Assembly (NCBI GenBank): GCA_965240325.2
Contig: OZ251241.1
Coordinates: 1,426,001-1,490,000, forward strand
Source: Rebecca billardiae RCC1528
Taxonomy: Eukaryota; Protista; Haptophyta
DNA: 64,000 bases
Direction of reading: 5' to 3'
The position numbers and the translations under genes are program-made. Positions 5,582 through 60,282 of the stretch are shown piece by piece. Under the pieces are notes generated by a model. It did not search any database. It was given only the letters and a program-made list of their open reading frames with translations, and was not told the DNA's origin. The stretch's first letter is position 1; every line of letters begins with the position of its first letter.

Positions 5582-8500
5582 TCACTGTCCGACGTCGACG
5601 TCAGCGGGACGGCCGCCCGCCGGACGAGTCGGCCTGGATCCGCCGCCGCCGCCGCGCTTGCCGCGCGCAGAGTAGCTGGCCCACTTCGCCTCGAGCAGCC
5701 GCAGCTGCTCCTCCTGCTCCGCCTGCAGCTGCGCGGCGCCGGCGGGCGAGGCGGAGGAGTCCGCGTGCGCGCCGCCGCTCGACGCATCGGCGGCGGCGGA
5801 CGCGCTCGCCGCCGAGCTGCTGCTGTGGTCGCGCGTGCCGCCGCCGCTGCCCAGGGCCGCCGCCTTGCCGCGGCGGTGCGCGTGGTGCGCCGCAATCAGG
5901 CTGGCCGACTCCGCCTCGGCGGCGCTGCCTTCGCTCACGCGGCCTCCGAACGAGCCCTCGCGCGACCCGCCGCCGCCCGGCAGCGGCCCCAGCTGCTGCT
6001 GCCGCCCCTGCTGCCCCGACAGCCGCATCGCGACGCCCGAGGCGAAGAGCTCGATCTGGGAGCGCGAGGAGCGGTTGCTCGGGAGGTGGTCGCGCGTGGC
6101 GCGCGTGCGCGATACGGCGGGCACCTGGTGCGGCGGCGGCGCGTACCAGTCGTCGCGCGAGCCCCTCAGCCCACTCCCGCGGCCCCCTGCCGCCCCGCCG
6201 CCGCCGCCGCCGCCGCCCCTCCGCCGCTGCTCCATCCAGGACGCGTGCAGCTGCGAGAGCTCCGAGAGAACACCCGTGTCCACCAGCGCCTCGGTGCTCG
6301 GGTCGGGCGCGGAGCGCAGCGCGCGAAGGCGCGGCGGCGAGTAGGGCTCGTCGTCGGAGTCCGAGTCCGCGGGGCCGCCCGTCGTGCCGCCGCGCCGCCC
6401 GCTGCCCCCGCGCCGCGACGGCGGCGGCGCCGCGCCGCCCAGGGCCTCGGGCCCGTCCGTCAGCTCGGCGACGTCCGCGGCTGGCGAGGGCGCGCGCGAG
6501 TGCTGCGCCCGCACTGGCAGCTGCGCCGGCGGCGGCAGCGGCGGCGGCGGGTGCGCGGAGGGCGCCTCGGCGGCGCTGGTGCGCGGGCCGAGCGAGGCGC
6601 GCTTGGCGCGCGCCTCATCCGCAGCGTGCACGGCGCGGCTCGCGATTCGGCTGAGGCTCTTGGGCGGCGGCGCCGGCCGCATCGGCGCGACGGGCGCGCC
6701 GCCGCCCACGGGCGCCGCGCCGCCGCCGCGGGCTGGCAGGCCGCTGGCGCCGTGGGCGGGGCTGGCCATGCTGCTGCCGCGCGAGGGCCACGAGTACCGC
6801 CCCTTGAGCGGCGCGCTCGACGGCGCGCCGCTTGTGCCGCTTGTGCGCTCCGGCGCGCGCTGCTGCGCCAACCGCTCAGAAATCGCCGGCGTGGTGCTGT
6901 GGCTGCGCGCGCGCGGGCCGAGGCCGAGCGCGGCGCCTGCGGCGGCGGTGGACGCGGTCGGGGAGATGGCGTTGCCCTCGCCCGCGCCCACGCCCGCGCC
7001 CACGCCCGCGCCCTTCCGCCCGAGCAGCTCGCGCATCCGGCCGCGCGCGCGCGCCGCCGCGGACGGGCGCACGTAAAACAAGTACTCCTCCAACTGCTCG
7101 ACCAGCCCGCCGAAGAAGTGGGCGGGAAACACGGAGTCACGGAGCGGCAGCACGAGGGCCTGGATGAGCTGCGAGGTGTGCGTGTCGCTCTGCAGCGCCA
7201 TCGCCCACAGCCCGAGCACCGTGTCCACCTGCGCCGTCGTCGGCCGGTGCGCGCGTCGGGCGGGCCGCGCGCGGCGGGGCGCCGGGAGAGCACCGGTGAG
7301 CGAATGGCGGCGGCGGCGCGGCGCGCGGTGGCGCGCGGCGCGCTGCGGAGCCACAGGCGGGCAGGCGGCGGCGGCGGCGGCGGCGACGCACCAGCTTGGG
7401 CTTGTCGTCCTCGTTGGTGAACTCGCCTGCGTCGCAACGAGCGCGCGCGCGCAGGGATGTAGAGAGCGAGCGAGACACGGGGGCACGCACGGGGGGCTCA
7501 GCCGCGCCGCGCCAGGCAGCCGCGCATGCCGCGCGCGCCGCGCTTGCCGCGCCGCGCGCGAGCGCCGCGCCGCCCGCGCCGCGCACCGTCAAAGACGCGA
7601 ATCGAGTCGAGCCACCAGTCGTCGTAGTTGAGCTCGGCGACGGGCTGCAGCTCGCCGCCGCCGTCCTCGCACACGTACATCCGCTCGCCCGCGCCGCCCG
7701 CCAGCGCCGCCCACTGCTCGAGCCGCGTCCAGCCGCGCGTCTGGTAGCTCGCCTTGTCACACTTGGCCCCGTGGTCGCGGTGCGTGGTCGGCGGCGCGAC
7801 CGCGAGGAAGTGGTGGGCTGTGGAGGCGTAGAGATGGAGGGAGCCGATGGAGAGGGCCTTGAGCGCGTCGCACGTCTGCGGCACCGAGACGTAGTCGATC
7901 TGCGCGCCGCGAGGCCACGCGCGCGCCGACGCGCCGAGGTCACGCGCGCGCAGACGCGCGCGGCGGCGCGCGCCGCGCGAGACCGCGCGGTCGAGCGCGC
8001 GAGCGCGCGGCGCGGTGCGGTGCGGTGCGGTGCGGTGCGCGGCGCGGCCGTGCTCACCCAGAGATAGACCGAGTCCGGGTCGATGCCTGCGCGCGTGCAC
8101 AGCGCGTCCACCGCGCGCACGATGCACGGGTAGTGCACGCCCTCCGGGTCCGGCTCGTCGAAGGCCAGCCACTGCGAGCGGCGCGCGCCCGCGGCGGTGG
8201 CGGCGGTGGCGGCGGCGTGTGAGCCCTTGACGGCGCGGCGCGGCGCGGCGCGGCGCGGCGCGGCGCGGCGCGGCGCGGCGCGGCGCGGCCGGCGCGGCGC
8301 GCGCCGGCGGCGGTGGCGGCGTGGGGCCGCGGCGGCGCGCAGCGCGGCGGCGCGCGGCGCGCGGGCTCGCGACGGCGCACCTGGTGCGAGACGAACACGA
8401 GCGTGTGCTCCGCCGCGAACTCGAGCACCTGCCCGTAAGTGTCGCAAACAACCAGCTCCGCCGCGTCGCGCACCGCCTCGTGCGGCAGCAGCTGGCCGTG

Positions 8501-11500
8501 GGCTCGGAAGTGGCGGAGGGGGACGTAGCACGCGGGGTAGGAGACGACGGTGGAGGCCTCGGTGGCGCGCACGACGCGCTCGGACATCTCCTTCTGCTGC
8601 TGCCGCCGCGCGGACTCGGCGGCGCGGTACCGCAGCACCGCCACCAAGAGCGCAGCACAGAGCAACACCGCGCCCGCCGCCGCGCCCGCCACCGCGGCAA
8701 TGATCACAAGCCAGCGCGCCGACCCCTGCGGCTGCGAGGCGGGCGGCGCGGCGCGCTCCTTGCCGCCGCCGCCGTCGTCGTCGTCGTCATCGTCGTCGTC
8801 GTCGTCGTCAGCGGCGGCATCGGTGCTGCCGCCCGCGCCGCCCGCGCTGCCGTCCGCGGGCGGCGCCGTGCCGCCGTGCGCGAACACGACACTTCCGGAA
8901 AGTTCCCACCGGCCGCCGGCGTACGCGCCGACGTCGACGAGGGCAGGCGGCGCGCCGCCGGCCGGGCGCACAACGTTGGCGAGGCGGAAGGCGGCGGTGC
9001 GCGCCGAGCGGTCGCCGCGCTCGTCCAGCTCGACCGAGCCCGACAGCCCGTCGAACGTCGGCAGCCGCGCCTCGCCATCCCACCAGCGCACACCCGCAAA
9101 CGCTGGCCGCGCGAGCCCGACGCTCGCGCCGCCGGCCGCCGCCGCGCGCGACGCGCGGCACGCGGCGAGGCCGAGGGCGAGGACGGCGTCGAAGGCGAAG
9201 GCGGCGGCGTGGTCCGGCACGGCGCCGGCGCCGAAGTAGTCGGGCGGCAGCCCCTCCGCGCCCGGCGGCAGCAGACCGTTCACCGCCTCGGGCGCGATCA
9301 GAGCGCCGCGCGCCCACGCGGCCGAAAATTCCTCCCAGCCCGCTCGACCGTCGACGCCGCCGCGCGCGCTCACGTGCGTCGCGCCGACGAGCGCGTCGGA
9401 GAGCGTCGGCTGGCGCTCGGCGAGCTCGGCGAGGGCGCGCGCCGAGCTCGCGCCGGTGAGCACCCAGTGGTACCCGCCGCCCACCAGCCCCAGCGCCGTC
9501 GCGTTCGCCAGCAGCTGCGACAAGTCCTCGTCGTCCGCGGCCGCGACGACCACCCGCGCGCCCGCGTCGCGCACGCGCGCGAGCGCGGCCGCGAGCGAGG
9601 GGGAGTCGAGGCGGTCGTACGGGGCGTCGACGAGCTCGATCCCGCGCGCGACCGCCTCGCTCGCCAGCGCCGCGCCGAGCCCCGCGCCGAACGCGTCGCG
9701 CGCGTGCACGCACGCCGCGCGCCGCCACCCGAACGCGCGCAGATGCTCGGCGATGGCGCTCGCGCCGAGTGAATCCGAAGGAACGGTCCGGGCGAAGGTG
9801 GGGTAGCGGGCCGGATCGGCGAGCTCGGGCGCGGTGGAGGCGTACGAGAGGAGGGGCACACCGTGCAGCCCCGCCAGCGTCGCGACGGGCACCGACACGG
9901 CCGAGCGCGCCGCGCCCACCACCGCATCCCATGACGAGAGCGCCGCGCCGACACCCGCCGCCGCCGCCGCCGCGCCGCCGCCACCGTCCGCCGCGGCGGA
10001 TGCGTCGCACGCGGATGCGCCGCCGGCCGAGTCGGCCGAGCACGCGCCGCCGGCGCGGCCGTCGATGTACGCCGCGGCGCCCGCCGCGGCGTCCCCGTCC
10101 GTCGAGCGCAGGTGCAGCACGAGCTGCACGTCGCACGGCGCGCCGGCCGCGGCGCCGGCCGCGCCGGCCGCGGCCGTGAGCGCGCCGCCGCCGGCCGCGG
10201 CCGGCACGGAGGGCAGGAGCGAGGCGTTGCGGGCGTTCCACAGCCGCGCGGCGGCGAGCGCGGCGATCATCGCGTCGCGCTCGGCGGGGTGCGCCACCGA
10301 GCCCGCCCCGCGCCACAGCCGGCCGAGCACGCCCACGTGCACCACGAGCGCGGCGAGGCCATCCGGCGGCGCGGCCGCCGAGCCGTCAGCAAACGTGAGC
10401 GGCGGCGCGCCGGCCGCGTCCGCCCAGCTGCCGTCCGCGGCGGCGTACGTGGCGACGGCGGTGAGCGCGGGGGGGGCGGTGCCGTCGGCGTCGGGGTAGA
10501 GCACGTTGAGCAGCTCGTACGCCAGGTCCGATCCTTCTCGCTCGCCCGTGCGCGCGTCGAAGCGCACGCGCCCGCTCATGCCGATAAAGTCGAGCGCGCG
10601 CACCGCGCCGCTCAGCCGCGCGGCGTCGGCGAGCGCGGCGCCGTCGGCGAGCGCGCACGCGGCGAGGCCGAGGGCGGCGACGGCGTCGTACGAGTAGGCG
10701 ACGCGAGGGGACGGCACGAGCGGCGCGCCGCTCGCGTTCGCGCCCGTCAGCCACGCCGCCGCCGCGCTCGCCGACGCCGCCGAGGGCATCGCGCCAACCG
10801 CCGCCGCCGCGTCCACCGTCGCCCACGCGGGCTCCGAAAATGCGCCGAAAGCGCCCGCGCGGTCGGCGCTCGGGCCGACGCGCACGGCGCCGTGGAGCAG
10901 CCGGCGCGCGCTCGGGCCCGTCGCGCCCGCGAGCGCGCCCTCGCTCACCCCGTCCGCCAGCACCACGTGCGAGTCCGGGCCGCCCAGTCCGGCCGCCGCC
11001 GCCGCCTCGAGCACGGCGCCGAGCTGGCCGTCGGCGATCGCTCCGACGAGCACGCGCACCGGCGCGCCCGAGAGGGAGGTCATGCGCCGCGCGGCGGCGA
11101 GGAGGGCGGGCGGGTCGTCGTCAGGCCCGATCGAGCCGCGCACCACGCGCACGCGCGCCTCGGCGCACAGCGCCTCGAGCGCGTCCGCCAGGCCGGCGCC
11201 GACCGCGTCGGTTCCGTGCAGCAGACCAATCTCGCGCCAGCCGTGCCGCGCGAGGTGCGCGGCGATGGCGGCGGCGGTGGCGCGGTCGCTCGCGACGGTG
11301 CGCGAGAAGAAGGCGTGCTCCACGGCGGACAGCGCGACCGCGCTCGACGCCGGCGAGACCTGCACGATCGGCACCGCCGGCCCGATGGCTGCCATCGGCA
11401 GCGAGGCGGCCGAGTCGTGCGCGCCGACCACGGCGTGCCAGCCGCGCGTGCGGCGGCCGTCGACGAGGGCGCGGGTGGCCGTGGCCGGGTCGTGCTCGCT

Positions 11501-11758
11501 GTCCACGACCTCCACCGCCAGCCGCGCCTCGCACCCGCGCACGGCCGAGCCGTTCAGCGCGCCCACGACCGCCGGCGAGCGCGCGTTGAAATGCGCAGCG
11601 GCCGCGAGCGCGCCGAGCGCGTGCTCGACGTGCGCGGCGTCGAGCGGCATGACGAGTCCCAGCTTGAGGTCGAAGGGCGCGCCTCCCACCGAGGCGAGCC
11701 ATGCAAGGCACAACGCGCGCGCCAACCGGCGCGCGCCCGGCGGGCTGCGCCCGGTCAT
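5582..11758 (-). CDS. Single-pass receptor: signal peptide + two tandem Venus-flytrap (ANF-receptor/class C GPCR-type ligand-binding) domains + TM + cytosolic HET/TIR-like domain + low-complexity tail; exons 11758-8381, 8171-8058, 7899-7587, 7426-7392, 7228-5582
   Basis: VFT motifs QVSPASSAVALS...FSRTVASD and LLSYASTAPELADPARYPTFARTVPSD. TM WLVIIAAVAGAAAGAVLLCAALLVAVL. Spliced cytosolic domain VFVSHQW...YLWIDYVSVPQ...RGWTRLEQW...FDGEFT. Four GT-AG introns restore the frame. Confidence 0.8.
8232..8290. repeat. Intronic (GCGCG/CGCGG)n pentamer microsatellite
   Basis: Tandem cgcgg units read directly. Similar pentamer runs occur in other introns (8010-8045, 58390-58440). Confidence 0.8.
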
Positions 11759-12303
11759 CGTAGCCGCTGGGGGAGCTGCCTGCGCAGCTCACCGCCACGG
11801 CCGGGATCTCTCAGAGATGCGCTGCTCGTTCAAGGGAGTGTGTCATCAGCCTCGGCTCGTCGTCGCAATGATATGCGGCCGACGAAAAGGGAACCACATA
11901 ATATGCTCGTTCAAGCCCACTGGGTACGTTTGCCTCAATTCGAAGACTCTGGTGGCGAGCGTTCAGGCTTTGTGGGCCGGCGTCTAATCAGAAAGACGTA
12001 ATCAGTAAGACGGCGAGACTGACGACCACAAAAGCAAAATCATTGTGCCGCCGGTCACGTCTTCATTATGAAATTCGCGTAGCTTCGACTCTCAGTGTTG
12101 CCGATATGATCATTGGCGCGTCAAAGCTGCAAACTGCAAAGCGTTGCGCTTCCATGAGCAAGCGCCGTCAATACAGTACATACTCCCTTGATGGCTGCGC
12201 CATGGCTGATGCATCAAAGGACGGTGTCCATGCCGTCGCGGGCATGCACCATCACCGTGTAGGCGTGTACTGGCTGGCCCTCGGGGTACGGCCATCAATC
12301 ATA

Positions 12304-23102: not shown

Positions 23103-26100
23103 ATGTCCACGAGCCTCGTCGAGAAGGAAGTGGTGATCGTCGGCAGCGGTGCCCGTGCGCGCGTGAGCGAGTGCATCAGCGATGACTGGCTCAAGCTCGC
23201 GCCGGGCAGCGAGATTGGCGAGGTCAGGCGCGACGGCGTGCTCGTGCTGCCCATCGCGCCCAGCTCCATGCAGTACTTGACAGCGCACAACATTGACTTC
23301 AACACGCGCGTCGGCGACGGGTTTGTCGACCCCGGCCGGCACGCCTTGAGCGCTGCGCCACTCGTGCCAGAGGATCTCGCCCGCCTCCCCGCTGGCGAGT
23401 TCGGCGAGCGCGAGGTGCTCGTGGTCGACACTCGCATCGACGCGTCCCTGCGCGAGTGCATCGAGCGAGCTCGCTCTGTCGTGCGTCCCATCACAGTCAA
23501 GCGCGATCGCATCAAGGCGCTGGGCGCGCACGTGTCCGGGCTGCTCGGCGGCTTGCCGGATGACGCCGACATCGGCGAGCGCTCCGGCCGCCACATCCGC
23601 GCGCTCATGCAGGCGAGGCGCTCGATGCTCGTGCCGCTCGGCCAGATCTCGCACGGCGTGTGCCGGCACCGCGCGCTGCTCTTCAAAGTGCTGTGCGACG
23701 CGCTCGGCATCGAGTGCGCGCTGGTGCGCGGCGACATCCACGGGGAGACGGGGGCCGGAGGGCCGGCCGGAGGGCACACGTGGAACGTGGTGCACGTCAA
23801 CGGCAGCGCGCTCATCGTCGACGTGATGCTCCGCCCGGGCGAGCTCTACGCGGAGGGCGCGTGCGACCATTACCTCCGCCTCGCCGAGCGGAGCGGCGGC
23901 GGCGGCGGGGCGCAGCATCACGGTGCCGGGCTGAACAGCCTGCCCGCGCCAGCGCCGCGTGAGCCGTGGCACGTGCGACCGGTCGACGTCGAGATCGAGC
24001 GCGGCGCGGACGGCGCCGAGGCGGAGCTCGGCAGCGGCGGGTTTGGGCGCGTGTTCGCGGCGCGGCTGCGAGGCGCGCAGCCGGTCGCGGTGAAGCGACT
24101 AAACGCCGCGGGCGCGAACGCGCGGCTCGAGTTTGAGGGCGAGGTGGAGATGCTGCGCGGGCTGCGCAACGCGCACATCGTGCTCTTCTACGGCGCGTGC
24201 GTCGAGCCGGAGAACCTGATGATTATCACCGAGCGCATGCGCGGCGGCAGCCTTCACGACGCGCTCGCGGGCGCGCCGGCGCGCGTCGCGTGGGCGGCCG
24301 CGGGTGCGCGGATCGCGCTGCACGTGGCGTACGCGCTGCACTACCTGCACACGCTCGAGCCGCCGGTGGTGCACTACGACGTCAAGCCGGCCAACGTGCT
24401 CCTCAACGAGGACTACAGCCTGGCCAAGCTCGCAGATGTGGGGCTGGCGCGCACGATGGCTCACTCCCTCCAGACGGTCCCGGGATGCACGCTTGCATAC
24501 GCCGCGCCCGAGGTGATGGATAGGCGCGCGACCGAGAAGGCGGACGTCTACAGCTTCGGCAGGCTCGTGGACGACCTGCTCACTCGAGCGCAGAGCCCCC
24601 GCCCGCCAGCCGAGCCGCCGGCGGACGTGCTCGAGCTGAAGCTTCGCTGCGTGCAATGGGAGCCGGCCCTTCGGCCCAGTGCGGCTGATCTGGTCTGGGC
24701 GTTGGAACGCCATTGGCTGGACGATGAGCGCGCAGTTGACGCGGCGCCTCCTGTCGAGCAGCCGCCTGCGCCGTCGTGGCCCGAGCCACCGCCCGCAGCG
24801 CCAGGCCGCCCTGCCGCTACCGGGCCCGGGGAGGCGGAGCTGGCCGCGATGAGCTGGCCGGAGCTCTGTGCAGCCCTCTACCTCACAGCCTCCGACCCGG
24901 CCGGGGCCGAGTGCGCGCTGCGCGCGGCTGCGAACCGGACGGGGCCGGGAGAGGATGGAGATGTGGCGAGGCGGGATGCCGCCGACGCGGGCGCGCTCGG
25001 CGCGGTGGTGGCCGCAATGGGCGCGCACGCGGCGAGCGCGGGCGTGCAGTCGCACGCGTGCGCCGCGCTGCGCAACATCTGCACTGGCACGAACGCGCGC
25101 GGGCTCTCGCGCAAGCAGCAGGCTGTGGACGCGGGCGCGCTCGGCGCGGTGGTGCGCGCGATGGATGCGCACACGGCGAGTGCGGCCGTGCAGGAGCAGG
25201 CGTGCACGACCCTGGTCACCATCTGCGCGGGCGCCGATGCGGCTGCCTGTGAGCGCGCGCAGCACGCCGCCGCGGTCGGCGCGCTCGGCGCGGTGGTGCG
25301 GGCGATGCGCGCCCACTCGACGCACGCGGTGCATGAGCAGGCGTGCACGGCCCTCGCGGCGCTGTGCGCTGGCGACAGCGCGGCCAGCCGCGCGCGCACA
25401 CAGGGGGCGGTCGCGCGCGTGCAGCAGGCGGCGGAGCGCGCGCAGCAGGCGGCGGAGGCGGGCGCGCTCGGCGCGGTGGTGGCGGCAATGCGTGCGCACG
25501 TGGCGCGTGCGGGCGTGCAGACGCAGGCGTGCCGTGCGCTGCGCAACATCTGCGCCGGCACCGACGCGGCCGGCCGCTCGCGCGCGCAGCAGGCGGCCGA
25601 GGCGGGCGCGCTCGGCGCGGTGGTGGGCGCGATGGGCGCGCACGCGGCGAGCGCGACCGTGCAGGAGCAGGCGTGCCGCGCGCTGCGCAACCTCTGCCTT
25701 CGCACCGACGAGGCCGGCCCCGCGCGCGCGCAGCACGCGGCCGCGGCGGGCGCGCTCGGCGCGGCGGTTGTTGCGATGCGCAAGCTCAAGGAGAGCACCG
25801 CTGTGCAGGAGCAGGCGTGCCTGGTGCTCGCCACGATCTGCGCGGGCGACGGCGAGGCCGCGCAGCAGGCGGCCGACGCGGGCGCGCTCGGCGCGGCGGT
25901 GAGCGCGATGCGCAAGCACAAGGCCGAAGCGGGCGTGCAGGAGCAGGCGTGCTTCGTGCTCGCCACCCTCTGCGACTTTTACGACGCGGCCGGCCGCGAG
26001 CGCGCGCAGCGGGCGGCCGACTCGGGCGCGCTCGGCGCGGTGGTGGCCGCGATGCGCGCGCACGACAAGAACGCGGGCGTGCAGGAGTACGGGTGCTGGG

Positions 26101-26297
26101 CAATGGACAGCATCTGCGCTGGCACCGACGCGGCCGGCAGCGCGCGCTGGCAGCAGGCAGCAAAGTCGGGTGCGCCCGCAGCGCTCAAGGCTGCGCAGAA
26201 GAAGCACGGCACCTCCCGGCCACAGCTGCAGGAGCGGACAGCCAGTATGCTCACGCAGCTGAGCAACCTGAGCCTCAGCAGCGGCAGTGCGTCGTAG
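23103..26297 (+). CDS. EDR1/CTR1-type N-terminal domain + TKL Ser/Thr kinase + C-terminal armadillo repeats
   Basis: DGFVDPGR, GVCRHRALLFKVLCD and GHTWNVV (EDR1 domain). GSGGFG, VAVK, HYDVKPAN, DVG, APE and DVYSFG (kinase). About 8 repeats of GALGAVVxAMxAH...VQEQAC. Intronless 1064-aa ORF. Confidence 0.88.
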   Translation: MSTSLVEKEVVIVGSGARARVSECISDDWLKLAPGSEIGEVRRDGVLVLPIAPSSMQYLTAHNIDFNTRVGDGFVDPGRHALSAAPLVPEDLARLPAGEFGEREVLVVDTRIDASLRECIERARSVVRPITVKRDRIKALGAHVSGLLGGLPDDADIGERSGRHIRALMQARRSMLVPLGQISHGVCRHRALLFKVLCDALGIECALVRGDIHGETGAGGPAGGHTWNVVHVNGSALIVDVMLRPGELYAEGACDHYLRLAERSGGGGGAQHHGAGLNSLPAPAPREPWHVRPVDVEIERGADGAEAELGSGGFGRVFAARLRGAQPVAVKRLNAAGANARLEFEGEVEMLRGLRNAHIVLFYGACVEPENLMIITERMRGGSLHDALAGAPARVAWAAAGARIALHVAYALHYLHTLEPPVVHYDVKPANVLLNEDYSLAKLADVGLARTMAHSLQTVPGCTLAYAAPEVMDRRATEKADVYSFGRLVDDLLTRAQSPRPPAEPPADVLELKLRCVQWEPALRPSAADLVWALERHWLDDERAVDAAPPVEQPPAPSWPEPPPAAPGRPAATGPGEAELAAMSWPELCAALYLTASDPAGAECALRAAANRTGPGEDGDVARRDAADAGALGAVVAAMGAHAASAGVQSHACAALRNICTGTNARGLSRKQQAVDAGALGAVVRAMDAHTASAAVQEQACTTLVTICAGADAAACERAQHAAAVGALGAVVRAMRAHSTHAVHEQACTALAALCAGDSAASRARTQGAVARVQQAAERAQQAAEAGALGAVVAAMRAHVARAGVQTQACRALRNICAGTDAAGRSRAQQAAEAGALGAVVGAMGAHAASATVQEQACRALRNLCLRTDEAGPARAQHAAAAGALGAAVVAMRKLKESTAVQEQACLVLATICAGDGEAAQQAADAGALGAAVSAMRKHKAEAGVQEQACFVLATLCDFYDAAGRERAQRAADSGALGAVVAAMRAHDKNAGVQEYGCWAMDSICAGTDAAGSARWQQAAKSGAPAALKAAQKKHGTSRPQLQERTASMLTQLSNLSLSSGSAS

Positions 26298-26691: not shown

Positions 26692-26778
<87 letters not shown>
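26692..26778. repeat. Long (TA)n microsatellite
   Basis: About 85 nt of uninterrupted TA. Confidence 0.95.
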
Positions 26779-26891: not shown

Positions 26892-29843
26892 CTACACGGC
26901 AGCGGACCACGAGAAGCCGGCCAGCGCCTGGCGCATCGCAGCGTGCGTCGCGCGGTTGAACTTGTCCGCCGCGTCCGCCTCCGCCTCGTCGAACAGGGCC
27001 TCGAGCAACCCGAAGATGATATGCCTGTCCTCCTCCACGGAGGACATGGAGGCGCGCACGTCGAACGTGGTCAGCGCCGAGACGAACGCGGAGCGGTCGC
27101 GCGCGAGCGCCGCCGCGACCGCGCGGAGCTCGTCGGTGGGCAGCGCCAGCCCGATCGGCAGTTCCTCGAGCGCGGCGATGAGCACCTCGACTGGCGGTCG
27201 GGGCGGCGGTGCGGTGCGGCGCGCACGCGCGGGGCGGGCGCGCGGGCGTGAGCGGTGCGCGCTCGCGAGGTGCACGCGCCCCGCCGCGTGCCCCGCGCGC
27301 CCGCGCGCCCCCACCGCCGCGCGCACAGAGGCACCACGCGCGCGTGAGGCACACGGGCGCCGTCCACGGCTGCAGCACGAGCACGACCCGCCCAGTCGCG
27401 CGCACGACGTCGCCGATGTGCCGAACTTCTTGTCGGGTGGTGCCCTGGCGCATGCAGAGGACGTCGATCCCTGCGCCGCGCGGCGCGAGGCGCGGCGGGG
27501 CGCGGGGCACGCGCGCGCGCCGCGGCGTGAGCCGTGCGCGGGCATGGGGGCGACGGCGGAGGGCGCGAGCTCGGCAGCGCGCGCGCCCCCACGCGCGCGC
27601 ACACACGCCGCGCCGGCGGCCCGCCCACTGGCTCGGGTGGGGTCGGGGCGGCGCGAGGCCGCGCGCGAGCCAGCCGGCGCGCGCGGCGCGAGCTCGCGAA
27701 AGCGCACGCACGGTGCGCGCGGTGACGCACTGCCGCGCCCGCCGCTGCGCGCGAGATGCAATCTCGCCGCGCGCGAGATGCAATCTCGCGGGGAGCGCGC
27801 GCGCGCGCGCACACGGAGGCGCGCGAGATGCAATCTCGCGGGGAAGGCGCGCGCGCGCACGCGCGCACAGAGGTAGGTGTCTGTGGGCTTCAGGTCGTGG
27901 ATGCGCGCGTACAGCTCGATGGCGGAGAGCATCGCGTCGAAGTCGCACGCCTGCGCGTGGCTCACGAACAGGTTCGCGCGCGCCACCGCCGCGGAGCCGT
28001 CCGTCGTGCGCCTGCCCTCCACCATCTCCACCAGTGAACTCGGACCGGCCGCCGGCCCGCCCAGCCCGCGTAATCGGCGCGCGGCCGGGGACGCGCTGAG
28101 CTGCCGGGCGACGAGTCCGATTTGGTAGGAGGCGACGCCGCGCGGGGCGCCGAGCTCGGCCTGCAGCGCGCGCACGTACCCCAGCTGCACGCCCAGCAGC
28201 AGGTGCGGCCGCTCCGCCGCGAGCTCGGCCGCTTCGGGCAGAGCGATGGTGACGGTGGCGGCGGCGGTGGCGCCGGCCGCGGCGGCGCTCGGCCGGCTCT
28301 GCGCGGTTGGATAGATGATGTGTGACCGCGGCCGCTGCTGCGTGAACACGGCTTGCGTGTGCGCGGTCGAGACCAGGCTGTGCGGCGTGCGGCGAGCCTC
28401 CGCCGAGAGCGCACCGCTCGCGACGCAGCGGCACAGCCGGCGCACCGCACGCCACGCAAGCGAGCACAGCCGCGCCGCGGCCGCGAGCAGAGCGCGCGAC
28501 GCCCGCTCGAGGGGCCATGGCGCGAGCTCGCGGCCGAGCGGTGCGAACGTGGTGGCGTGCACGGCGGCGCTGCCGTTGAGCGCGGTGTGGAAGACGCCGA
28601 CCACGACGCAGTTGGCCCACGGCCGCACCATCGCGGCGGGCAGCCCCATCCCCGCAAACAGCGCGATCGCAGACGCTAGGTTGGTGCATCCCATCGCGCG
28701 AGTCAGCCGGCGCGCGACGCCCGGCGGCAGCGACGTGAGCACCTTGCGCGCGCGCCAGTGCGTGTGCAGCGAGAGCGCGAGGACGAGGAGCGGGAGCAGC
28801 ACGGCGCCGGTGCCCACCTGCACGACCTCCAGTGCCTGCGGCGCCGAGAAGAACCAGCACGCGCCCGTCCCGACGTCGAGCGCAGCAATGGCCGCCACGA
28901 ACGCAAGCAGCCGGCGGCGCGCGCGCGGGCTGTGCGCGAGCGTGGGCGAGGCGAAGCGCGCGCCGTCGACGTCGGCGGAGGGCCACGCGGCCTGCGCCCA
29001 GTAGAGCAGGAAGAGGGTGCCCGCGACCACGCCGATCGAGACGTACGCGATGAAGAGGATCAGCCACACCGGGTATGGCACACGCACTGGGCCGTGCAAG
29101 CACCGGATGCCGAGCCGGAGCAGCTGCGCGGCCAGCTCGAGCAGCAGCACCGCCTGCGCGATGCCCGGCGACAGGCGGCCGTCCGCGCGGTAGAAGGCGC
29201 GCAGCCGGTTGACGAGGAGCTCGACGAGCACGGCGTGCTGCACGCCGAGCAGCACGTCGCGCGCGACCCATGCGGGTGAGAAGGGCAAAGCGGCCCACAC
29301 CGTCTCCGAGCGGGCAAAGCGCGCGCGCACGTCCGCGCCCGCGAGGAGCGCGTCCATCAGCGGCTGCGCGCCGCGGTGCGTGATGTCGGCGGCGGGCGGG
29401 TGGGGCAGGCTGCGCGAGTCGCCCGGCCAGAAGTGGTGGTACCGCCATCCCGGCAGCGGGTCGAAGGCCAGGCCGGCCGCGCCGCTATAGAGGAGGTACC
29501 CGACCGCGCCCGCGGCGCCCGCGGCGCGCGCGATCGACTCGAGCGAGCAGTCGCTGAGCGGCGGGCTGTGCTTCACGACGATGGTGCCGTCGAGCGAGCG
29601 CGCGCCCACGTACACGGGCGGGCACAGCCGGTCGTTCCACTCGTCCGACGGCGTGAGCACCACGCGCGCGCGCACGTCAAACGCGGCGGGCGTGAACGCG
29701 AACGGCGCGGCGAGGAGCTCGACGCCGAGAAGGTGCGGCGGGCCGGCCTCGATGACGAGGCGCGCGCTCGCGGGGCGCGCCGCGAGGAGCGTGAGGAGGG
29801 CGACGACGGGCGCCCGTCGCAGCCACGGGCGCCGCTGGCGCAT
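26892..29843 (-). CDS. Receptor-like protein: signal peptide + PA (protease-associated) domain + 7 TM + cytosolic HET/TIR-like domain; two introns (~27868-27471 and ~27326-27192)
   Basis: PA-like segment LDGTIVV...CSLESIARAAGAAGAVGYLLY...ADITHRGAQPL. Seven hydrophobic helices. Spliced FVSHAQAC...YLWIDVLCMRQ...LQPWTAPVCLTRAWCLFEV. Confidence 0.75.
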   Translation of the reverse strand: MRQRRPWLRRAPVVALLTLLAARPASARLVIEAGPPHLLGVELLAAPFAFTPAAFDVRARVVLTPSDEWNDRLCPPVYVGARSLDGTIVVKHSPPLSDCSLESIARAAGAAGAVGYLLYSGAAGLAFDPLPGWRYHHFWPGDSRSLPHPPAADITHRGAQPLMDALLAGADVRARFARSETVWAALPFSPAWVARDVLLGVQHAVLVELLVNRLRAFYRADGRLSPGIAQAVLLLELAAQLLRLGIRCLHGPVRVPYPVWLILFIAYVSIGVVAGTLFLLYWAQAAWPSADVDGARFASPTLAHSPRARRRLLAFVAAIAALDVGTGACWFFSAPQALEVVQVGTGAVLLPLLVLALSLHTHWRARKVLTSLPPGVARRLTRAMGCTNLASAIALFAGMGLPAAMVRPWANCVVVGVFHTALNGSAAVHATTFAPLGRELAPWPLERASRALLAAAARLCSLAWRAVRRLCRCVASGALSAEARRTPHSLVSTAHTQAVFTQQRPRSHIIYPTAQSRPSAAAAGATAAATVTIALPEAAELAAERPHLLLGVQLGYVRALQAELGAPRGVASYQIGLVARQLSASPAARRLRGLGGPAAGPSSLVEMVEGRRTTDGSAAVARANLFVSHAQACDFDAMLSAIELYARIHDLKPTDTYLCARVRARAFPARLHLARLRVRARARSPRDCISRAARLHLARSGGRGSASPRAPCVRFRELAPRAPAGSRAASRRPDPTRASGRAAGAACVRARGGARAAELAPSAVAPMPAHGSRRGARACPAPRRASRRAAQGSTSSACARAPPDKKFGTSATSCARLGGSCSCCSRGRRPCASRARGASVRAAVGARGRAGHAAGRVHLASAHRSRPRARPARARRTAPPPRPPVEVLIAALEELPIGLALPTDELRAVAAALARDRSAFVSALTTFDVRASMSSVEEDRHIIFGLLEALFDEAEADAADKFNRATHAAMRQALAGFSWSAAV

Positions 29844-35133: not shown

Positions 35134-35164
<31 letters not shown>

Positions 35165-36384
35165 AGCGGGAGTGCGCGGCGCCGCGCAGCGGGCGCGGTG
35201 CGCGGTGCGCGCGGCGGCGTCGGCGGCGAGGTCGCGCGGCGGCGCTCGGCGCGACGCGCGCGGCTCGGCGGCGGCTGCGGCGGCTGCGGCTGCGGCGGCG
35301 CGCGCGGCGCGGCGCGGGGCGCGCGCGCCGCCGGCTTCGTCGGCGGCGCGGCGGGCGCGTCGAGCGCGGCGTCGAGCGCGGCGTACGCCTCGCGCGCGGC
35401 CCTCGACCCGCGCGCGCGCTCGCGCAGCACGCGCAGGCACCGCCGCGCCGCGCCCACGGCCGCGTGCGCGCGCGCGCGCGCGGCCGCGTAGCGCGCGCGC
35501 GCGCGCACGTGCGCCGCTGCGCGCGCCGCCGCCCACACCGCCGTGAGCGCGCGCGCGGCGGCGCGGCGGCGTGTGGCGGCGGCGGCGGCGGGGTGGTGGG
35601 CTGCGGCGTGGCGTGCGCGGCGGCCGAGCGCGTGCGCGCACAGCGCGAGCAGACCGCGCGCGCGCCGCGCCGCGCCCGCCGCCGCGTCGGCGGCGGCGGC
35701 GCGCGCCGCGCGCGCGTCGGCGCGCGCGCCGCGCGCGCGCCACGCGCGCCACGCGCGCGCGCGCGCGCCGCGCGCCGCGGCGGCAGCGTGCGCCGCGCGC
35801 CACGCGGCGTGGGCGTCGTGCCGCGCGGCGCCTGCGCGCACGCGCGACCACGCGCGGCGCAGCCCGACGAGCCGCGCGCGCGCCGCGCCGCGCGCGTCGA
35901 GCGCGGCGGCGGCCGCGCGCGCGGCCGCCGCCGCCGCCCACGCGCGCGCGCGGCGCGCGGCCGCGGCGCGCGCGGCCGCGCGCCGCGCGCCCGCCGCGTC
36001 CGCCGCGCGCTGGGCGGCGGCGCGGAGCGCAGCGAGCGCGGCGGCGCAGCGCGCGCGCGCCTTCCGCGCCCCGCGCGCCCGCGCCTCCGCGCCCGCCTCC
36101 GCCGCCGCATCCGTCGCCAGCCGCCACCCGCCGAGCGCGCGCGCCGCCGCGCCGCGCCGCACGCGCGCCGCGCGCTCGCGCGCGCCGCTGCTGACGAGCC
36201 GGCTGCGAAGTGCAGAGAGCCGAAGGGCTGACAGGGCGAGCTTGGCGGCGAGGCGCGCGCGGAGCTCGCCGAGCATGTGCGCGCGCAGCGCGGACGCCTC
36301 GGAGCCCTCGCCGCCCGGGCCCGCCGCGCCCGCGCCCGCCGCCGCCGCCGCCGCTGCCGCCACAGTCCTGCGTGCCGCGCCGCG

Positions 36385-54299: not shown

Positions 54300-54790
54300 G
54301 CCGCACGGGGCGTCGCCGCCGGGCTCGGGCCCGTCGGCTGGAAGTCGAGCGGGCCACCACGGCGCACGGCGCACGGCGTTGGCGCGACCTTGTGGCGCCC
54401 GCTGCCGCAGGCCGCTCATCCGTCTCCCCGAGAGCTATCGGCAATCCGTGAGGCGTGAGCGTGTCCGGCGGCCGCCCGGGCTGAGCGGCGACCTTGTCGG
54501 CGGAGGAGCTGCGACTCTAGATCTACAGGCCTGATGAGCGAATAATTATCGGATGAGCTTGATTACCCAGGCACATGAGATTTAAAATTAGATACCGCCC
54601 ACCTTGGCCATGCAAGACGGTTATGAACACTTGTCGCGAGCGTAACGACGTACTAGTAAAGTAGTAATGCTTGCCCACGGCCATTGAGACGAATAATACG
54701 TGGTTGATGCAAGCCGCAAGTTTTGGCGCGGCGCGAGCTGTTAGGGGCATGGGCCCCCGTCGGCTGCGCTGGTGATCAGCTGGGGTGGCG

Positions 54791-57700
54791 ATGGCCTTCG
54801 CCGCGCTCCTGCCGGCGGCGGCGCTGGGCCGGCTCGCGCTGGCGGCGGGCGGGGTGCTTGACGCGCCGCGCTTCGCCTTCTCCCCCGCCGGCGCGCCGCC
54901 CGTCACCGGACCGCTCGTGCTCACCGAGCGCGCGGACTGGGCGGACGGCGCGTGCCCGCCGCGGCTCGCGACCGCTGCGGACGCAGCGCGGCTGCGCGGC
55001 GCGATCGTCGTGCACGTCGACGCGCCGTTCGTCGCGTGCAGCCCCGAGCAGCACGCCCGCGCCGCCGCGGCGTACGGCGCGTCGGGCTGGCTCCTCTTCG
55101 CCGAGGAGTTCAGCCGGTTCGACGCGACGCCAGGCTTTGCCGCCGGCTTGCACGTGAGCGGCGACACGCGCGCGTTCGGCGGCGGCGTGGTCGCGGCGGA
55201 CATCACGTCGGGCGCGGCGTCGGCGCTGGTGCGGCAGCTCCGCGCCGGCGGCGCGCCGCACGCCACGCTGCACCCCTCCGCCTCCGCCTTCGACGCGCTC
55301 TATGGCAGTTGGCCGGTGCTGCTGCTACTTGCGTTACTCACGCTTGAGGCGGCGCACGCGGCTGAGGTCGCGATCTCGCGGCTGCACGCGTTCCTGCGCG
55401 CGGACGGGCGGCTGCGGCTGACGATCCCGCAGCTCATGCTCGCGCTCGAGCTCTGCGTCGGCCTCTCGCGCCTCGTGCGCATGGGCACCGACCCACTTTT
55501 TCTCTGGCCGGGCCGGCTGGGCGTACACCCGGCGGTTGCGCTCGCGTCGAGCGAGCTCGCGCTCACGTCGGTGTCGACGGTGCTGAGCCTGGTGTACTTC
55601 GTGGAGGCGGCGGACGTGGCGGGCCTCGCCTCGTTCCGCATCACCTCCGCCGCCAACCGCCGCCTCATCCTCGCCGCGCTCGTCGGCACGCCGCTCATCG
55701 ACTCCGCCCTCGCCGGCCTGTTCGCGCGGCACTCGGCAACGCTCGCGGCTTTTGTCGGGCGGACGGTGTTCGCGTTCGGCGTGGTGCCGTGGGGCGTGCT
55801 CGCGTTCGCGGCGCACGCGCACCGCAAGGTGGGCGCGAGCATGCGCCGCGCCTCCGCCCCGCCGCGCGTCGTCGCCCGCCTCAGCGCCGTCACCGTCCGC
55901 CTCCTAGCCATGTCCGCGTTGCTCGCGCTTGTTGCGTCGGGTTGGCCGCCATCGCTGTTCGCACCGTGGCGCCGGCTCGTGGCGCACGCGGCGCTGGTCG
56001 CGGTGTGCACGGCGGCGTCGATGCTCAAGCTGCACCTCTTCCGGCCCGTCGGCGTCGCCATCGTCCCCGGCCCGCTCGAGCGCGCGCACGCGCTCCTCGC
56101 CGCCGCGTGCGCGCGCGCGCTCTCGCGCAGCCGCGGGGCATCGGCTGTCGTCCCGGCGGACGCGGACGGCGAGGACGACGAGAGCGCGCACGCGCGCGAG
56201 CTGGGGCTGGCGGAGGGCGCGGCGCTCGAGCTGCAGCGGCGCGAGCGTTTCTCCTCGCCCGAGCTCGGCCGCACGCGCTTCGAAGCCTTCATCGGCGGCG
56301 GCGGCGGCGACAGCGGCGGCGCAGCAGCTGAGGGTGCAGGCGGAGCGCCATGGCAGTTAGTTCGATCGCGCTCGCTGCAGCCCAGCCCGCCCGGCTCGCC
56401 CGAGGGGTCGGCGTCGCGCGCGCAGCTGTGGCGGCAGCTGCTCTCGCCGGGCGGCGTGCGCAAGCTCGTGCGCACGCCGCCGCCCCAGCCGCCGCCGCCC
56501 GAGCAGCGACGCGCCACCTGGGTCACGCGCCGGCTCGGAAGCACCGGCGGCGCACGGCGCGGCTCGTCGGCGCAAGGGGGTTTCGTCAGCTCGCCGACGC
56601 TGGAGCGGCTGCGCGGCGGCGCGCTGGGTCGGTCTCGGCAGCAGAGCGGCCAGCTGGGCGGCTCGCCGCGCTCGAGGCGCGCAAGCGGCCCGCTCGCCGC
56701 GCGGCGGCTCAGCGGGCCGCTCGCGAGCGCGGCGGCGGCGGTGGCGGCGGCTGCGACGGACGGCGGCGGCAGTGTCGGTGGCACGCCACAGCGCCGGCCG
56801 CGCGGGCGCTCGTCGCTCGGCACCACCACGAGCAGCGGCAGCGGCTTCGGGCTTGTTGGCAACGGCGGCGGCAGTGGCTCGACCAGCCGTGGCAGCGCGA
56901 GCCGCCGGTGCACGCCGCTGCCGCCCGGCCGCTTCGGACCGACGCTCGCCGCCGGGGCGGAGGGCCCCGCGGACCGGCCGCGCCGCGGCGTCTCCGAGGA
57001 TCTCGCGCGCCGAGATCCGATCTCGCCGGCGCGAGATCCGATCTCGCCGGCGCGAGAGGCGATCTCGCCGGCGGCGCGAGCGATGGTCCCGCCGGCGGCG
57101 CGAGCCACGACCTCGGTGGCGGCTGGCCCCGGCTCGCCGCTCGGCGGCTCGGCGGCTCGGGGGACGGCGCTGCACGCGCGCGGCGGCGGTGGCGGCTCGC
57201 CGCTCAACCCGCGCCGCGCGGGCAACTCGCCGCTCAACCCGCGCCTCTTCCGCGCGGCGAGCGCCACGGCAGAAGGCGGCGGCGGCGGCAGCATGGCCGC
57301 CGCGGCGGCGTGCGAGGGCGCGCCGCCCCGCGGCCCGGCGCCCGACGAAGGCGGCGGCGGCGGCGGCGGCGGCGATCGGCTCGCAGGTGTGGAGATGCTG
57401 AGACGGCACGCGTCGGCCGGGCAGGCGGGCGCGGCTCCGCGCCCGGCCGCAGCGGCGCGCGTGCCCGCGTGCGCGCTCACTCGCCCCTCGCTCAGCGGCG
57501 GGCACGTTCCCTCGGCCGTGCTGCTCGCTCGCGCGGAGGTGGCGTCGGCGGAGCCGGGCGCGGCGGCGGAGCCGACACCGCCGCTGTGTGCAGGCTCGCC
57601 AGCGGCGGCGGGCGCGGCGGCGCGCCGCGTTCCGCGCGCGGGCCCCGCACGGCACAGCGGCGAAAGTGCCGGAAGTGCCGGCAGCGCCGCTCGCCACACG

Positions 57701-59131
57701 CGCGGCAGCGGCAGCCCGGGCGGCGCGTGCCTCGCGCGGCCGGGCGGCGGCTGCGCGACGCGCGGCGCGCCGCGGCTGAGCACGAGCTCGCTCTCAAGCT
57801 ACGGCGAGAGCTACGGCAGCGCTGGCTCCATGAGTACTAGCGGAGCAAGCGGCGGCTCTCTCGGCGCCGCCGGCTCGGGCGCGAGGTCCGGCGGCGCGTC
57901 GCGGCACGGCGCGGCTGCGGGCGGCGGTGGCGGCGGCGGCTCGGGTCGCGACTCGGCGCTGACGGTGCCGGGCGCCGAGCGCGCGCCGCGCCGGAGCCAC
58001 GTGGGCGGGCTGCCCGAGCACCTCACGCTCGGAGTCTCCCTAGCGTACCTCCGCGAGTTTTCGGCGGAGCACGGGCTTGGCGCCGGTGACCCGACTTATC
58101 GTGTGGGCGAGATCGTGAGCGCGCGCACGCGCGAGTCGGGGCTGTCGATGTGCGAGCTGCTGCGCGCCTCGGCGCTGTGCACCGCGGACGGCCGGCCGGC
58201 GGTGCGCGCCGCGGGGCTCTTCGTAAGCCACGCACAGGCGTGCTCCTTCCTAGGCCTTCTTGACGCGCTCGCGCAACACATGGAGCTGCACACACTGCCG
58301 CCCGAGCGCACTTACGTCTGGATAGAGTGCGCGCCAGCAGCGCGCCGCCGCGCACCGCACCGCGCCGCCGCCGCGCGCGCACCGCACCGTGGCGTGCCGC
58401 ACCGCACCGTGCCGCACCGCACCGCACCGCACCGCACCGCCGCGGGACGCGCCGCGAGCCCGACGCGCGTGCGCCCAGCACCGACCGCGCCCCCAAATAC
58501 CCAGCCCTAACCCAAACCCCAACCCTCAACCCCAACCCTCAACCCGCCCCCGTACGCGCGGCACGCACGGCGCTCCCCACGCGAACCTCGCCCCCTGTCG
58601 CCCGAACCCGACCCCTCCGCCTGACGACGACACACACCAGTGTCTTCTGCATCCGACAGCACCGCGTCGATTTTGACGTGCTGCACATTGGAGCGATCGT
58701 GCGTCACGTGGCACGCACGGTCGCGATCCTGGAGCCGTGGGACCGGCCGGCGTGTCTGACGCGCGTGTGGTGCCTGTTCGAGATCATGCACGCGCACCTG
58801 GCGCACGCGGAGGGCGGCGCGGCGGCGGGGCAGCCGCAGGCGCAGGGCGGCGCGCTCGCGGCGGCGGACCGCGGCGGGCGCGGCTCAGACGAGCGCAGCC
58901 TGCGCGCCTCGACCGAGCGAAGCGGCCGCACGTCGGAGGAGCACTGCTCGGGGCGCGCCGCCGCCTCCGAGCCGCACACCCGCGCGACCGAGCTCGCACG
59001 CAGCCCGTCGGCCAGCGGCGGCGCAGAGGCCGGGCTCCTCGCCGACGTGGAGGGCGGCGGCGGCGGCGCGTGCGCGGTCGGTTCGAGCTTCCGCACGCTG
59101 CGCGTGAGCGCGAGCTACGCAGACTTCGGCA

Positions 59132-59163
<32 letters not shown>

Positions 59164-59958
59164 CAGCCATCGCCGCCGCGCGGCGCGGCGCGCGGCGCGG
59201 CGGCGAGCTTCTCACTCGCCCTCTCGAGCGCGCAGCGCGAGGCGTTCCTGCGCGCGCTCGACTCCGACCGCGAGACGGTCGTGCGCACGCTCACATCTTT
59301 TGACGCGCGGCACGCGGAGGCGTCCCTCGACGACGACCGCACGCGCATCCTCGAGCTCATCATCTCGCGGTTTGCGCCGAGCGGGCTGAGCGCGGCGCAG
59401 CTGCGCGCGCGCGGCGCCGAGCGCGAGCCCGCCGACGCCGACGCCGCGCTCGACGCCTTCAACTCGACGGTGCAGGCGGCGATCCAGGCGGCGGTCGCGG
59501 GCATGTCGTGGGGCAACCTCGTGTCGTGCGGCGCGGCGGCCGAGCGCGGCGGCGCGGCGTCGTCGTCGCCGGACGCCGGGCGGCACGGGCGCTCCTTCCG
59601 CTTCGGCGCGCTGGGCTGCCGACTCTTCCAGACCTCCTCCGCCTCGCGCCTCGACGACAGCGGCAGCGCCGCGGCGCGGCGGCGCGAGCGCAGCGGCGGC
59701 TCCGCGCGCGAGCGCAAGCGCAGCGTGGCGTGCGACGCGCCGCTCCCGATCGGCCGCAGCGCGAGCGCGTTCGTGCCCGCGCTCCGCCGCAGCCTCTCGG
59801 TGCGGAGGCCGAGCGTCGCGTCCGCCGCCGGCCCGATCAACGCCGCCGGCAGGCTCGCCGCGGCGGTGCGGCACGGCAGCCAGCGGGAGGCCGAGGCGGC
59901 GCGGCGGCGCACCGCGCCACCCGAGAGCGGCGGCGCGGAGCGGCACACGCGGAGCTCA

Positions 59959-59997
<39 letters not shown>

Positions 59998-60282
59998 AAC
60001 GATGATGACGATGAGCACGTTGTCGCGGTCGTCGTGCCCGCACGGCGCAGCGGCTCGCCGCCGCTGGCGCAGCGGCAGCCAAGCAGCACTGCGGTGCGCA
60101 CAGCCGGCGGAGGCGCTGCCGCGGCGCCACCAGCGGCGTCGTCCTCCGCGACTGACGGCGCCACCGAGCGGCGGCGACATCCCGAGCAGCAAGGCGGAGA
60201 CTCTGCTGACGCAGCTGACGGGCAGCAGCAGGCCCCAGCCTGCACGACGGCGCAGCAGCCGCGCGCAGAGTATCACGCCTGA
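54791..60282 (+). CDS. Paralogous receptor-like protein: signal peptide + PA domain + 7 TM + long disordered linker + HET/TIR-like domain; intron 58327-58640
   Basis: Same order of motifs as the 26892-29843 gene (LRGAIVV, ADIT, RLxAFxRADGRL, HLxLGVxLxY). Spliced FVSHAQAC...YVWIDVFCIRQ...LEPWDRPACLTRVWCLFEI. Confidence 0.75.

Follow-up and report, generated by a model that had tools for sequence, protein, structure and literature searches.

Analysis of a 64,000-nt stretch of the haptophyte Rebecca billardiae RCC1528 (contig OZ251241.1, positions 1,426,001 to 1,490,000 of the forward strand; hereafter the window, in whose own numbering all coordinates are given) uncovered three intact, intron-split genes that are predicted to encode membrane receptors. 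Each joins an extracellular N-terminal part and one or seven membrane helices to a cytosolic domain that resembles the heterokaryon incompatibility (HET) domain of fungi. We refer to them as genes A, B and C: the first carries two Venus-flytrap domains and a single membrane helix, while the other two are paralogues with a PA-like ectodomain and seven hydrophobic helices. The explanation that we favour, with a probability of about 0.8, is that these genes encode surface receptors with a divergent HET-like cytosolic output. Fungi carry many HET domains, which act as cell-death modules, and TIR domains serve as immune enzymes of central importance in animals, plants and bacteria. Homologues of HET in haptophytes, and a remote relationship between HET and TIR, have been reported previously (Dyrka et al. 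2014; PMC4986451).

Three intron-split receptor genes

The window is extremely GC-rich (60-91% G+C in 2-kb bins) and long open frames therefore occur on every strand. The three regions named in an initial annotation of this DNA were translated in three frames with exon boundaries placed by script, and Pfam and structure tests used exon pieces, local scripts or the closest database homologue. Gene A (5582-11758, minus strand) has five exons (8381-11758, 8058-8171, 7587-7899, 7392-7426 and 5582-7228) and encodes, as modelled, a type-I receptor of 1828 aa. Gene B (26892-29843, minus strand) has three exons (27869-29843, 27327-27470 and 26892-27190) and encodes 805 aa that combine the PA-like part, the seven-transmembrane (7TM) part and the HET-like domain, and gene C (54791-60282, plus strand), its paralogue, has two exons (54791-58326 and 58641-60282) and encodes 1725 aa as modelled. 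The introns lie at 8172-8380, 7900-8057, 7427-7586 and 7229-7391 in gene A, at 27471-27868 and 27191-27326 in gene B, and at 58327-58640 in gene C. All seven start with GTGCGC or GTGAGC (almost uniformly GTGCGC) and end with CAG, and their G+C content of 78-92% exceeds that of most of the neighbouring coding sequence.

All three genes were found where the initial annotation had placed them, and its motif series emerges only after splicing. With a stroke marking an exon junction and brackets marking a codon divided by an intron, gene A reads FVSHQ/W, YLW/IDYVSVPQ, RGWTRLE and FTNEDDK; gene B reads LFVSHAQ, YL(W)IDVLCMRQ and RAWCL/FE, with W-I-D and F-E restored in frame; and gene C reads LFVSHAQ, YVWI(D)VFCIRQ and RVWCLFE. 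The earlier statement that introns split the domain, so that raw open reading frames (ORFs) miss the series, was likewise upheld by the spliced models and by collinear pieces matching a family hidden Markov model (HMM). A six-frame search with this HMM recovered no further copies of the motifs in the window.

DNA of this composition yields long spurious ORFs in all frames, and searches for sequencing runs of this genome listed none, both of which would suit a reading of the motif series as a product of splice choice in pseudogenes or wrong gene models. The homology evidence makes this reading highly improbable. Spliced gene A matches the independent family profile over 275 residues (337.7 bits, E 7e-105, HMM positions 2-276) and is free of gaps at its four junctions. 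Its unspliced six-frame pieces match successive segments of the same HMM in collinear order, which independently confirms the gene model. All 20 invariant residues of the family are retained, while Thr occupies the position in RGWTRLE at which the Cys of the family's RGWCRLE is nearly invariant. Furthermore, the intron boundaries are uniform, and genes B and C yield the same domain from different intron layouts, in an alignment that survives shuffling.

The extracellular part of gene A is predicted to contain two tandem ligand-binding domains, a first ANF_receptor/Venus-flytrap domain (10550-11524, minus strand; residues 79-403; Pfam PF01094 E 7.8e-23, 81.5 bits) and a second ANF_receptor/Peripla_BP_6 domain (9002-9958, minus strand; residues 601-919; PF01094 E 9e-42, 143.8 bits; PF13458 E 5.6e-14), both above the PF01094 cut-off of 25.4 bits. 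A single transmembrane (TM) helix follows (8633-8710, minus strand; residues 1017-1042, then RYR; hydropathy peak 2.58), and its peak window ends 87 residues ahead of FVSHQW, which is the mode of the family. The juxtamembrane HET-like domain, termed A-type (7064-8578, minus strand; residues 1061-1335, 275 aa, four introns inside), begins about 25 residues past the membrane and carries FVSHQW at 8395-8169, WIDYVSVPQ at 8060-7876, RGWTRLE at 7737-7717 and FTNEDDK at 7421-7401. The C-terminal low-complexity tail of about 490 aa (5582-7063, minus strand) is dominated by Ala, Gly, Ser, Pro and Arg, and its frame runs uninterrupted as far as the stop at 5582. It shows no Pfam match and no homology past HMM position 276; its exon structure is a model.

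Genes B and C are old paralogues and share 31-35% identity over their first 470 aa. Both have a hydrophobic N-terminus followed by PA-like segments at equivalent positions, in gene B at 29472-29603 (minus strand; residues 81-124; PF02225 E 0.0046, 17.5 bits) and in gene C at 54902-55129 (plus strand; residues 38-113; PF02225 E 8.3e-4, 19.9 bits). Both scores fall below the Pfam threshold of 23.9, and PA occurs in 10% of the members of the Atlas cluster family nearest to gene B, so the ectodomain is described here as PA-like only. The hydrophobic stretches that follow (gene B, 28545-29270, minus strand, residues ~192-433; gene C, 55316-56041, plus strand, aligned to the gene B helices) form seven conserved segments, which suggests seven TM helices in each protein. 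A low-confidence, two-sequence AlphaFold model of the PA-7TM part (pLDDT 40, used for the helix count only) gives helices at 190-221, 226-250, 259-285, 306-331, 336-369, 374-398 and 403-440 in gene B numbering, coinciding with these segments. The exon pieces of genes B and C match no Pfam 7TM family, and Atlas scores of the module to the THH1/TOM1, GPR137 and TPRA1 families reach only 0.64-0.68. Taken alone, the PA-7TM module has language-model look-alikes among hypothetical proteins of other eukaryotes (score 0.93), so genes B and C look like that module with a HET-like domain added.

The linker between membrane module and domain in genes B and C is long and variable, extending in gene C as modelled to about 700 aa of low complexity. 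In gene B, the HET-like domain of B/C-type (26991-27992, minus strand; residues 618-773, two introns inside) carries LFVSHAQ at 27971-27951, WIDVLCMRQ at 27869-27445, RAWCLFE at 27342-27186 and VEEDRHII at 27038. Its counterpart in gene C (58200-59373, plus strand, with intron 58327-58640 inside) carries LFVSHAQ at 58217-58237, WIDVFCIRQ at 58319-58659, RVWCLFE at 58762-58782 and DDDRTRILELII at 59329-59373, and contains a low-complexity insert of about 180 aa after the Glu motif. One helix in A or seven in B and C, combined with an extracellular N-terminus, would place the domain in the cytosol in all three proteins. Of the receptor anatomy originally described, the flytraps, which score above threshold, and the single helix of A stand, and seven helices are predicted for B and C; the PA assignment drops below threshold, and the putative signal peptides of A, B and C were judged by eye.

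The W-I-D motif is interrupted by an intron in all three genes, each time at a different site, the sites lying 2-5 nt apart. The intron follows the Trp codon in gene A (8057/8058, phase 0), the first base of the Trp codon in gene B (27868/27869, phase 1) and the second base of the Asp codon in gene C (58326/58327, phase 2), an offset that suggests intron sliding or independent gains. The second intron of gene B (WCL/FE) has no counterpart in genes A and C, and the first intron of gene B contains, within about 90 nt (~27760-27840), three GC-clamped palindromes with the core GCGAGATTGCATCTCGC, each a potential hairpin. Runs of pentanucleotide repeats (GCACC / GCCGC) are common to the introns, with no other similarity seen between them. 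This comparison gave no evidence of an origin of the introns from a single mobile introner.

Fold and relationships of the cytosolic domain

Taken singly, the B and C domains match the A-type family HMM only locally. When the aligned B/C pair was compared with the A-type alignment by hhalign, a probability of 96.5% was obtained (score 68.5, 152 columns) with four motifs in register, whereas the reversed pair scored 18.9 and 20 column shuffles scored at most 17.1 (control probabilities ≤0.5% for the shuffled and ≤0.9% for the reversed or shuffled pairs). By this comparison the A-type and the shorter B/C-type are two subtypes of one homologous domain, which bears out the original view that two unrelated sensor types are attached to one kind of effector.

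The fold was examined on P0004, the closest ANF-type homologue, rather than on a protein of the window. An AlphaFold2 model of its residues 578-872, built from the family alignment, reached a pLDDT of 93 and a pTM of 0.90. The predicted core consists of strand 60-66 (FxSHQ), helix 79-94, strand 102-106 (WxD), helices 116-132, strand 135-139 and helix 161-173, which starts with RGWCRLE; two additional N-terminal strands and a C-terminal helical bundle complete the model.

Several lines of evidence link this domain to HET. In the genes of the window the three HET blocks occur in order, as FVSHQW / WIDYVSVPQ / RGWTRLE in A and as FVSHAQ / WIDV[LF]C[MI]RQ / R[AV]WCLFE in B and C, the same order as in fungal HET proteins (Podospora HET-E/D/R and Bh; Neurospora TOL, PIN-C and HET-6), where the blocks read [LF]xS[YH]xW, WxDxxxIxQ and RxW[TC]xxE. 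Among the 38 aligned members of the A-type family, no Pfam family other than PF06985 matches repeatedly; it matches 13 of them at E ≤ 10 (E 1.4e-5 at best, with most scores under the gathering threshold), and residues 64-149 of P0004 pair with positions 4-96 of its 146. The AlphaFold and Foldseek comparison proposed in the initial annotation, carried out on P0004, also came out in favour of HET. Against a cluster of Ascomycota proteins of which 100% carry PF06985, the model gave TM-scores of 0.51 and 0.52 over 189 residues (model residues 17-274), with both sides of the comparison predicted, and only with this fungal HET cluster was 0.5 reached on both sides. In Swiss-Prot, Foldseek gave its highest probabilities to HET-E1 (0.90) and HET-6 (0.87), but with E-values of 0.06-0.09. 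Together, these sequence and model comparisons support a cytosolic alpha/beta domain that is HET-like and distantly related to PF06985.

Fusion to repeat modules (ankyrin (Ank), leucine-rich repeat (LRR) and TPR) is a further likeness, since it is found in fungal HET proteins and in the algal domain family alike. In fungi, however, HET lies at the N-terminus of cytosolic proteins that are NLR-like or fused to a lectin, whereas the algal domain is C-terminal and juxtamembrane in receptors with secreted ectodomains. The A-type also has parts that go beyond fungal HET, namely an extension of two strands at the N-terminus (HE..R...LDT), a loop with QWL....PDP and a helical part at the C-terminus (FT...DK..LVD..LGLW).

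The parallel with TIR, which had been drawn at the outset together with that to HET, fared less well, and we consider the TIR link weakly supported by the model and weaker than the HET link. VIA-align gave Z-scores of 5-6.4 to the TIRs of AbTir, SARM1, MyD88, TIRAP and SPARTA over model residues 59-210. None of six TIR models (PF01582, PF13676, PF08937, PF10137, PF08357 and PF18567) matched any of the 38 members at E ≤ 10, PADLOC returned no TIR match, and the profile found no TIR in the PDB. The predicted fold shares with TIR the order βA-αA-βB-αB-βC-αC and a conserved W-C-x-x-E motif at the start of αC, and strand C and W-C-x-x-E of the B/C-type are about as far apart as in TIR. The invariant Glu lies in the model in the first turn of αC, after strand 135-139, and so may correspond in topology to the catalytic Glu of TIR. 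The structural likeness to TIR is no greater than that to other flavodoxin- or Rossmann-like domains.

These scores also bear on whether the domain is instead a Rossmann-like nucleotide-sugar or nucleoside enzyme, akin to fucosyltransferases or deoxyribosyltransferases, with its HET and TIR likeness reflecting a common alpha/beta arrangement. Fucosyltransferases head the VIA-align comparison (NodZ 7.0, FUT8 6.4, FUT1 5.9 and POFUT2 5.2-5.3), aligning with model residues 6-207 and thus including the N-terminal extension, and nucleoside 2'-deoxyribosyltransferases reach a Z of about 6; FUT8 and the deoxyribosyltransferases thereby score as well as TIRs. All Z-scores are nevertheless below 8 and none stands out. 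No member has a glycosyltransferase Pfam match as against 13 of 38 with HET, TM-scores of at least 0.5 on both sides were obtained only with the fungal HET cluster, and a cytosolic juxtamembrane site behind sensory ectodomains is not a known context for glycosyltransferases. We therefore regard such an identity as very unlikely.

A number of observations weigh against our interpretation of the genes as receptors with a HET-like output. The splice models were derived from sequence, and for the low-complexity tail of gene A and the linker and tail of gene C the exon structure is provisional. Most family members score below the HET gathering score (P0004, 14.6 bits versus 22.5), and the exon pieces of the window have no Pfam HET or TIR match. 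In searches of solved structures, Foldseek found none in the PDB at E ≤ 1e-3, and the family profile found no relative among PDB sequences, only a chance ribosomal match. The best VIA-align score belongs to the fucosyltransferase domain NodZ and not to a TIR, and every Z-score is under 8, the level at which the tool warns of a merely common arrangement. Relatives of the B/C-type domain were not found in word-indexed searches of protein databases, for which the gene B N-terminus, the end of the gene B first exon and the gene C second exon served as queries; low-complexity words saturated the search with the gene B N-terminus. Finally, an enzymatic mechanism is proposed by analogy, and the mode of killing by fungal HET was described as "currently unknown" in 2024, NADase activity having been shown for no HET domain (PMC10890737).

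A modular receptor family in marine protists

To find relatives of the A-type domain, one gene A exon (104 aa) was searched with phmmer against 1.84 billion representative proteins clustered at 50%. This search recovered 666 representative clusters at E ≤ 1e-3, including 152 at E ≤ 1e-10. The family alignment contains 38 sequences with 20 invariant columns, each sequence being 30-42% identical to the first. Those relatives that carry a name are hypothetical proteins of Prymnesium parvum and Isochrysis galbana and entries from the MMETSP transcriptomes, and others come from marine metagenome and Tara collections. Relatives in structure clusters match at E 1e-9 to 2e-26; we take some of their accessions to be MMETSP, Emiliania huxleyi and Symbiodinium entries, and UniProt R1FA69 (A-type fold, E 1e-24) is presumably from E. 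huxleyi. Several relatives in the AFDB (E 1e-9 to 1e-21) are automatically named "Heterokaryon incompatibility domain-containing protein". Bacterial and archaeal genome contigs scanned with the gene A exon contained no relative, and Foldseek against viral structures returned no match at E ≤ 1e-3.

The N-terminal partners of the domain are diverse. Among 67 full-length relatives they include Peripla_BP_6 (7), ANF_receptor (4), FG-GAP (3), ephrin-receptor-like (3) and dCache (2), along with phosphonate-binding, OpuAC, laminin-G, EGF and Ig-like domains, and names in the AFDB contribute CHASE and Cache ectodomains, for more than 10 ectodomain types altogether. The modular system envisaged in the initial annotation is thus found among the database relatives, and on these matches the A-type receptors are a large and modular family of marine protists, mostly haptophytes. 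The same fold also occurs in soluble haptophyte proteins, fused to ankyrin, LRR (LRR_6, NLRC3-like), MORN and HNOB domains.

The position of the domain relative to the membrane is nearly constant. A TM-like segment lies upstream in 47 of the 51 relatives that have at least 130 residues ahead of FxSHQW, and 38 of the 51 have exactly one, at a hydropathy threshold chosen here. In 44 of the 47, this segment ends 74-92 residues before FxSHQW (mode 84-87; gene A, 87). This near-constant distance indicates that the A-type domain is an output module dedicated to the juxtamembrane position, with a fixed spacing to the membrane.

Two relatives, P0018 (972 aa) and P0038 (1071 aa), are encoded by uninterrupted ORFs on many near-identical ENA/Tara contigs of 4-9 kb, including contigs from the 0.22-3 µm size fraction, which suggests that abundant small plankton of the sea carry relatives without introns.

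Signalling proposals, known systems and neighbouring features

Beyond what is established above on gene structures, receptor anatomy, fold class and the homology of the domain types, we propose how the receptors might act. Ligand binding to the flytraps of A or to the PA-7TM module of B and C would alter the oligomeric state, the change would gather the juxtamembrane HET-like domains and switch on an enzymatic activity, and this activity, using NAD+ or another nucleotide as substrate, would lead to cell death or release a soluble signal. An enzyme is suggested by the polar residues that are invariant in the family (Ser-His-Gln, Asp, Asp, Gln, Arg, Arg, Glu and Asp). Drawn by analogy and taken as a whole, from ligand through oligomerisation to a nucleotide-consuming enzyme, the proposal is tentative and falls somewhat short of even odds.

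In the main alternative, the same receptors would act without enzymatic activity, as adaptors that recruit soluble proteins bearing the same domain (with Ank, LRR, MORN or HNOB partners) by homotypic contacts and leave these partners to relay the signal. Toll-like receptors recruit MyD88 by such contacts. Soluble proteins of the same fold, with Ank, LRR_6 (NLRC3-like), MORN and HNOB domains, are common in haptophytes, the fixed juxtamembrane spacing would fit an assembly platform, and an adaptor role for HET was proposed by analogy with TIR by Dyrka et al. 2014 (PMC4986451). However, the 20 invariant positions are mostly polar and of catalytic type in sequences of only 30-42% identity, a pattern more like an active site than an interaction surface, and we find a purely adaptor function doubtful. 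The two roles are not exclusive, as many TIRs do both.

The layout of gene A recalls several known receptors. Toll-like receptors follow the same logic, in which an ectodomain that binds a ligand is linked by one TM helix to an alpha/beta domain of TIR-like class in the cytosol, although their ectodomains are LRRs and those of the window are Venus flytraps or PA-7TM modules. In natriuretic-peptide receptor guanylate cyclases and in receptors of the class C G-protein-coupled type, a PF01094 flytrap likewise acts across the membrane on an output in the cytosol, and dimers are required for signalling. ANF-type receptors elsewhere, however, use a 7TM G-protein coupler or a kinase-homology domain with a cyclase, while gene A has two tandem flytraps and a HET-like output.

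A published parallel comes from another haptophyte. In Gephyrocapsa (Emiliania) huxleyi, genes with TIR domains respond to EhV infection, and some of the proteins have an extracellular leucine-binding or EGF-like region, one or more TM helices and an intracellular TIR with a conserved Glu (New Phytol 2025; PMC12489294). By its published description, this layout of ectodomain, TM and TIR-like domain resembles that of the proteins reported here. Those proteins were chosen through HHsuite matches to TIR Pfam families, and the paper describes neither a family-wide modular receptor system nor a relationship to HET (PMC12489294).

The novelty first claimed for this architecture was overstated. HET homologues had been reported from Stramenopiles, Haptophyceae (with E. 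huxleyi in a figure), choanoflagellates, green algae and bryophytes, together with HHpred similarity between HET and TIR (Dyrka et al. 2014; PMC4986451), and reviews have termed HET "TIR-like" (PMC12881547). Earlier publications thus cover this kind of HET-like, TIR-related domain, its occurrence in haptophytes and, for one haptophyte, TM-TIR receptors. Details of the architecture appear undescribed: the A-type subfamily as an output at fixed juxtamembrane distance common to many ectodomains, its size of at least 666 clusters, and the fusion of a PA-7TM module to a second subtype. Among the papers listed in a literature search, none joined "heterokaryon incompatibility" with a haptophyte genus name.

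At its broadest, the family might represent a third, independently assembled "Toll-like" system in haptophytes and probably in dinoflagellates and other marine protists, in which an enzyme domain of the HET/TIR superfamily, at a set distance beneath the membrane, would serve as the common output of dozens of chemically diverse surface sensors. Cues such as nutrients, infochemicals and signals from viruses or bacteria would thereby be converted into a signal for death or a second messenger derived from a nucleotide. We consider this picture speculative and rather unlikely in full; if it were true, receptors for soluble ligands would for the first time give a tractable way to find out what HET does biochemically. 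The marine algae concerned are ecologically dominant, and the ectodomains joined to their fixed juxtamembrane HET-like output have relatives that bind small ligands, among them amino acids, phosphonate and betaine. Such receptors would offer a handle on how phytoplankton sense their chemical and biotic surroundings, viral attack and bloom collapse included. They would also offer a handle on HET chemistry, as switching on a receptor by its ligand in vitro is much simpler than triggering a fungal incompatibility reaction, and the finding bears on the repeated origin in eukaryotes of receptors built from an ectodomain, a TM helix and a TIR-like domain.

Other features of the window lie near or within the receptor genes. 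ARAGORN called a 97-nt tRNA-Ala(CGC) at 54930-55026, but this lies within coding exon 1 of gene C and is probably spurious, given the GC-rich coding sequence there. About 115 nt past the stop of gene B, a perfect (AT)43 microsatellite (26693-26778) interrupts DNA that is otherwise about 70% GC. A 2.3-kb block at 33839-36188 exceeds 90% G+C and consists of degenerate GC dinucleotide and 9-21-nt repeats. Adjoining gene B, a tandem array at 24978-26158 has a period of 144 nt (48 aa) and about 8 copies with 75-77% matches; its repeat unit reads as armadillo/HEAT-type (…GALGAVVAAMRAH…VQEQACRALRNIC…), and the array is probably a separate repeat-protein gene.

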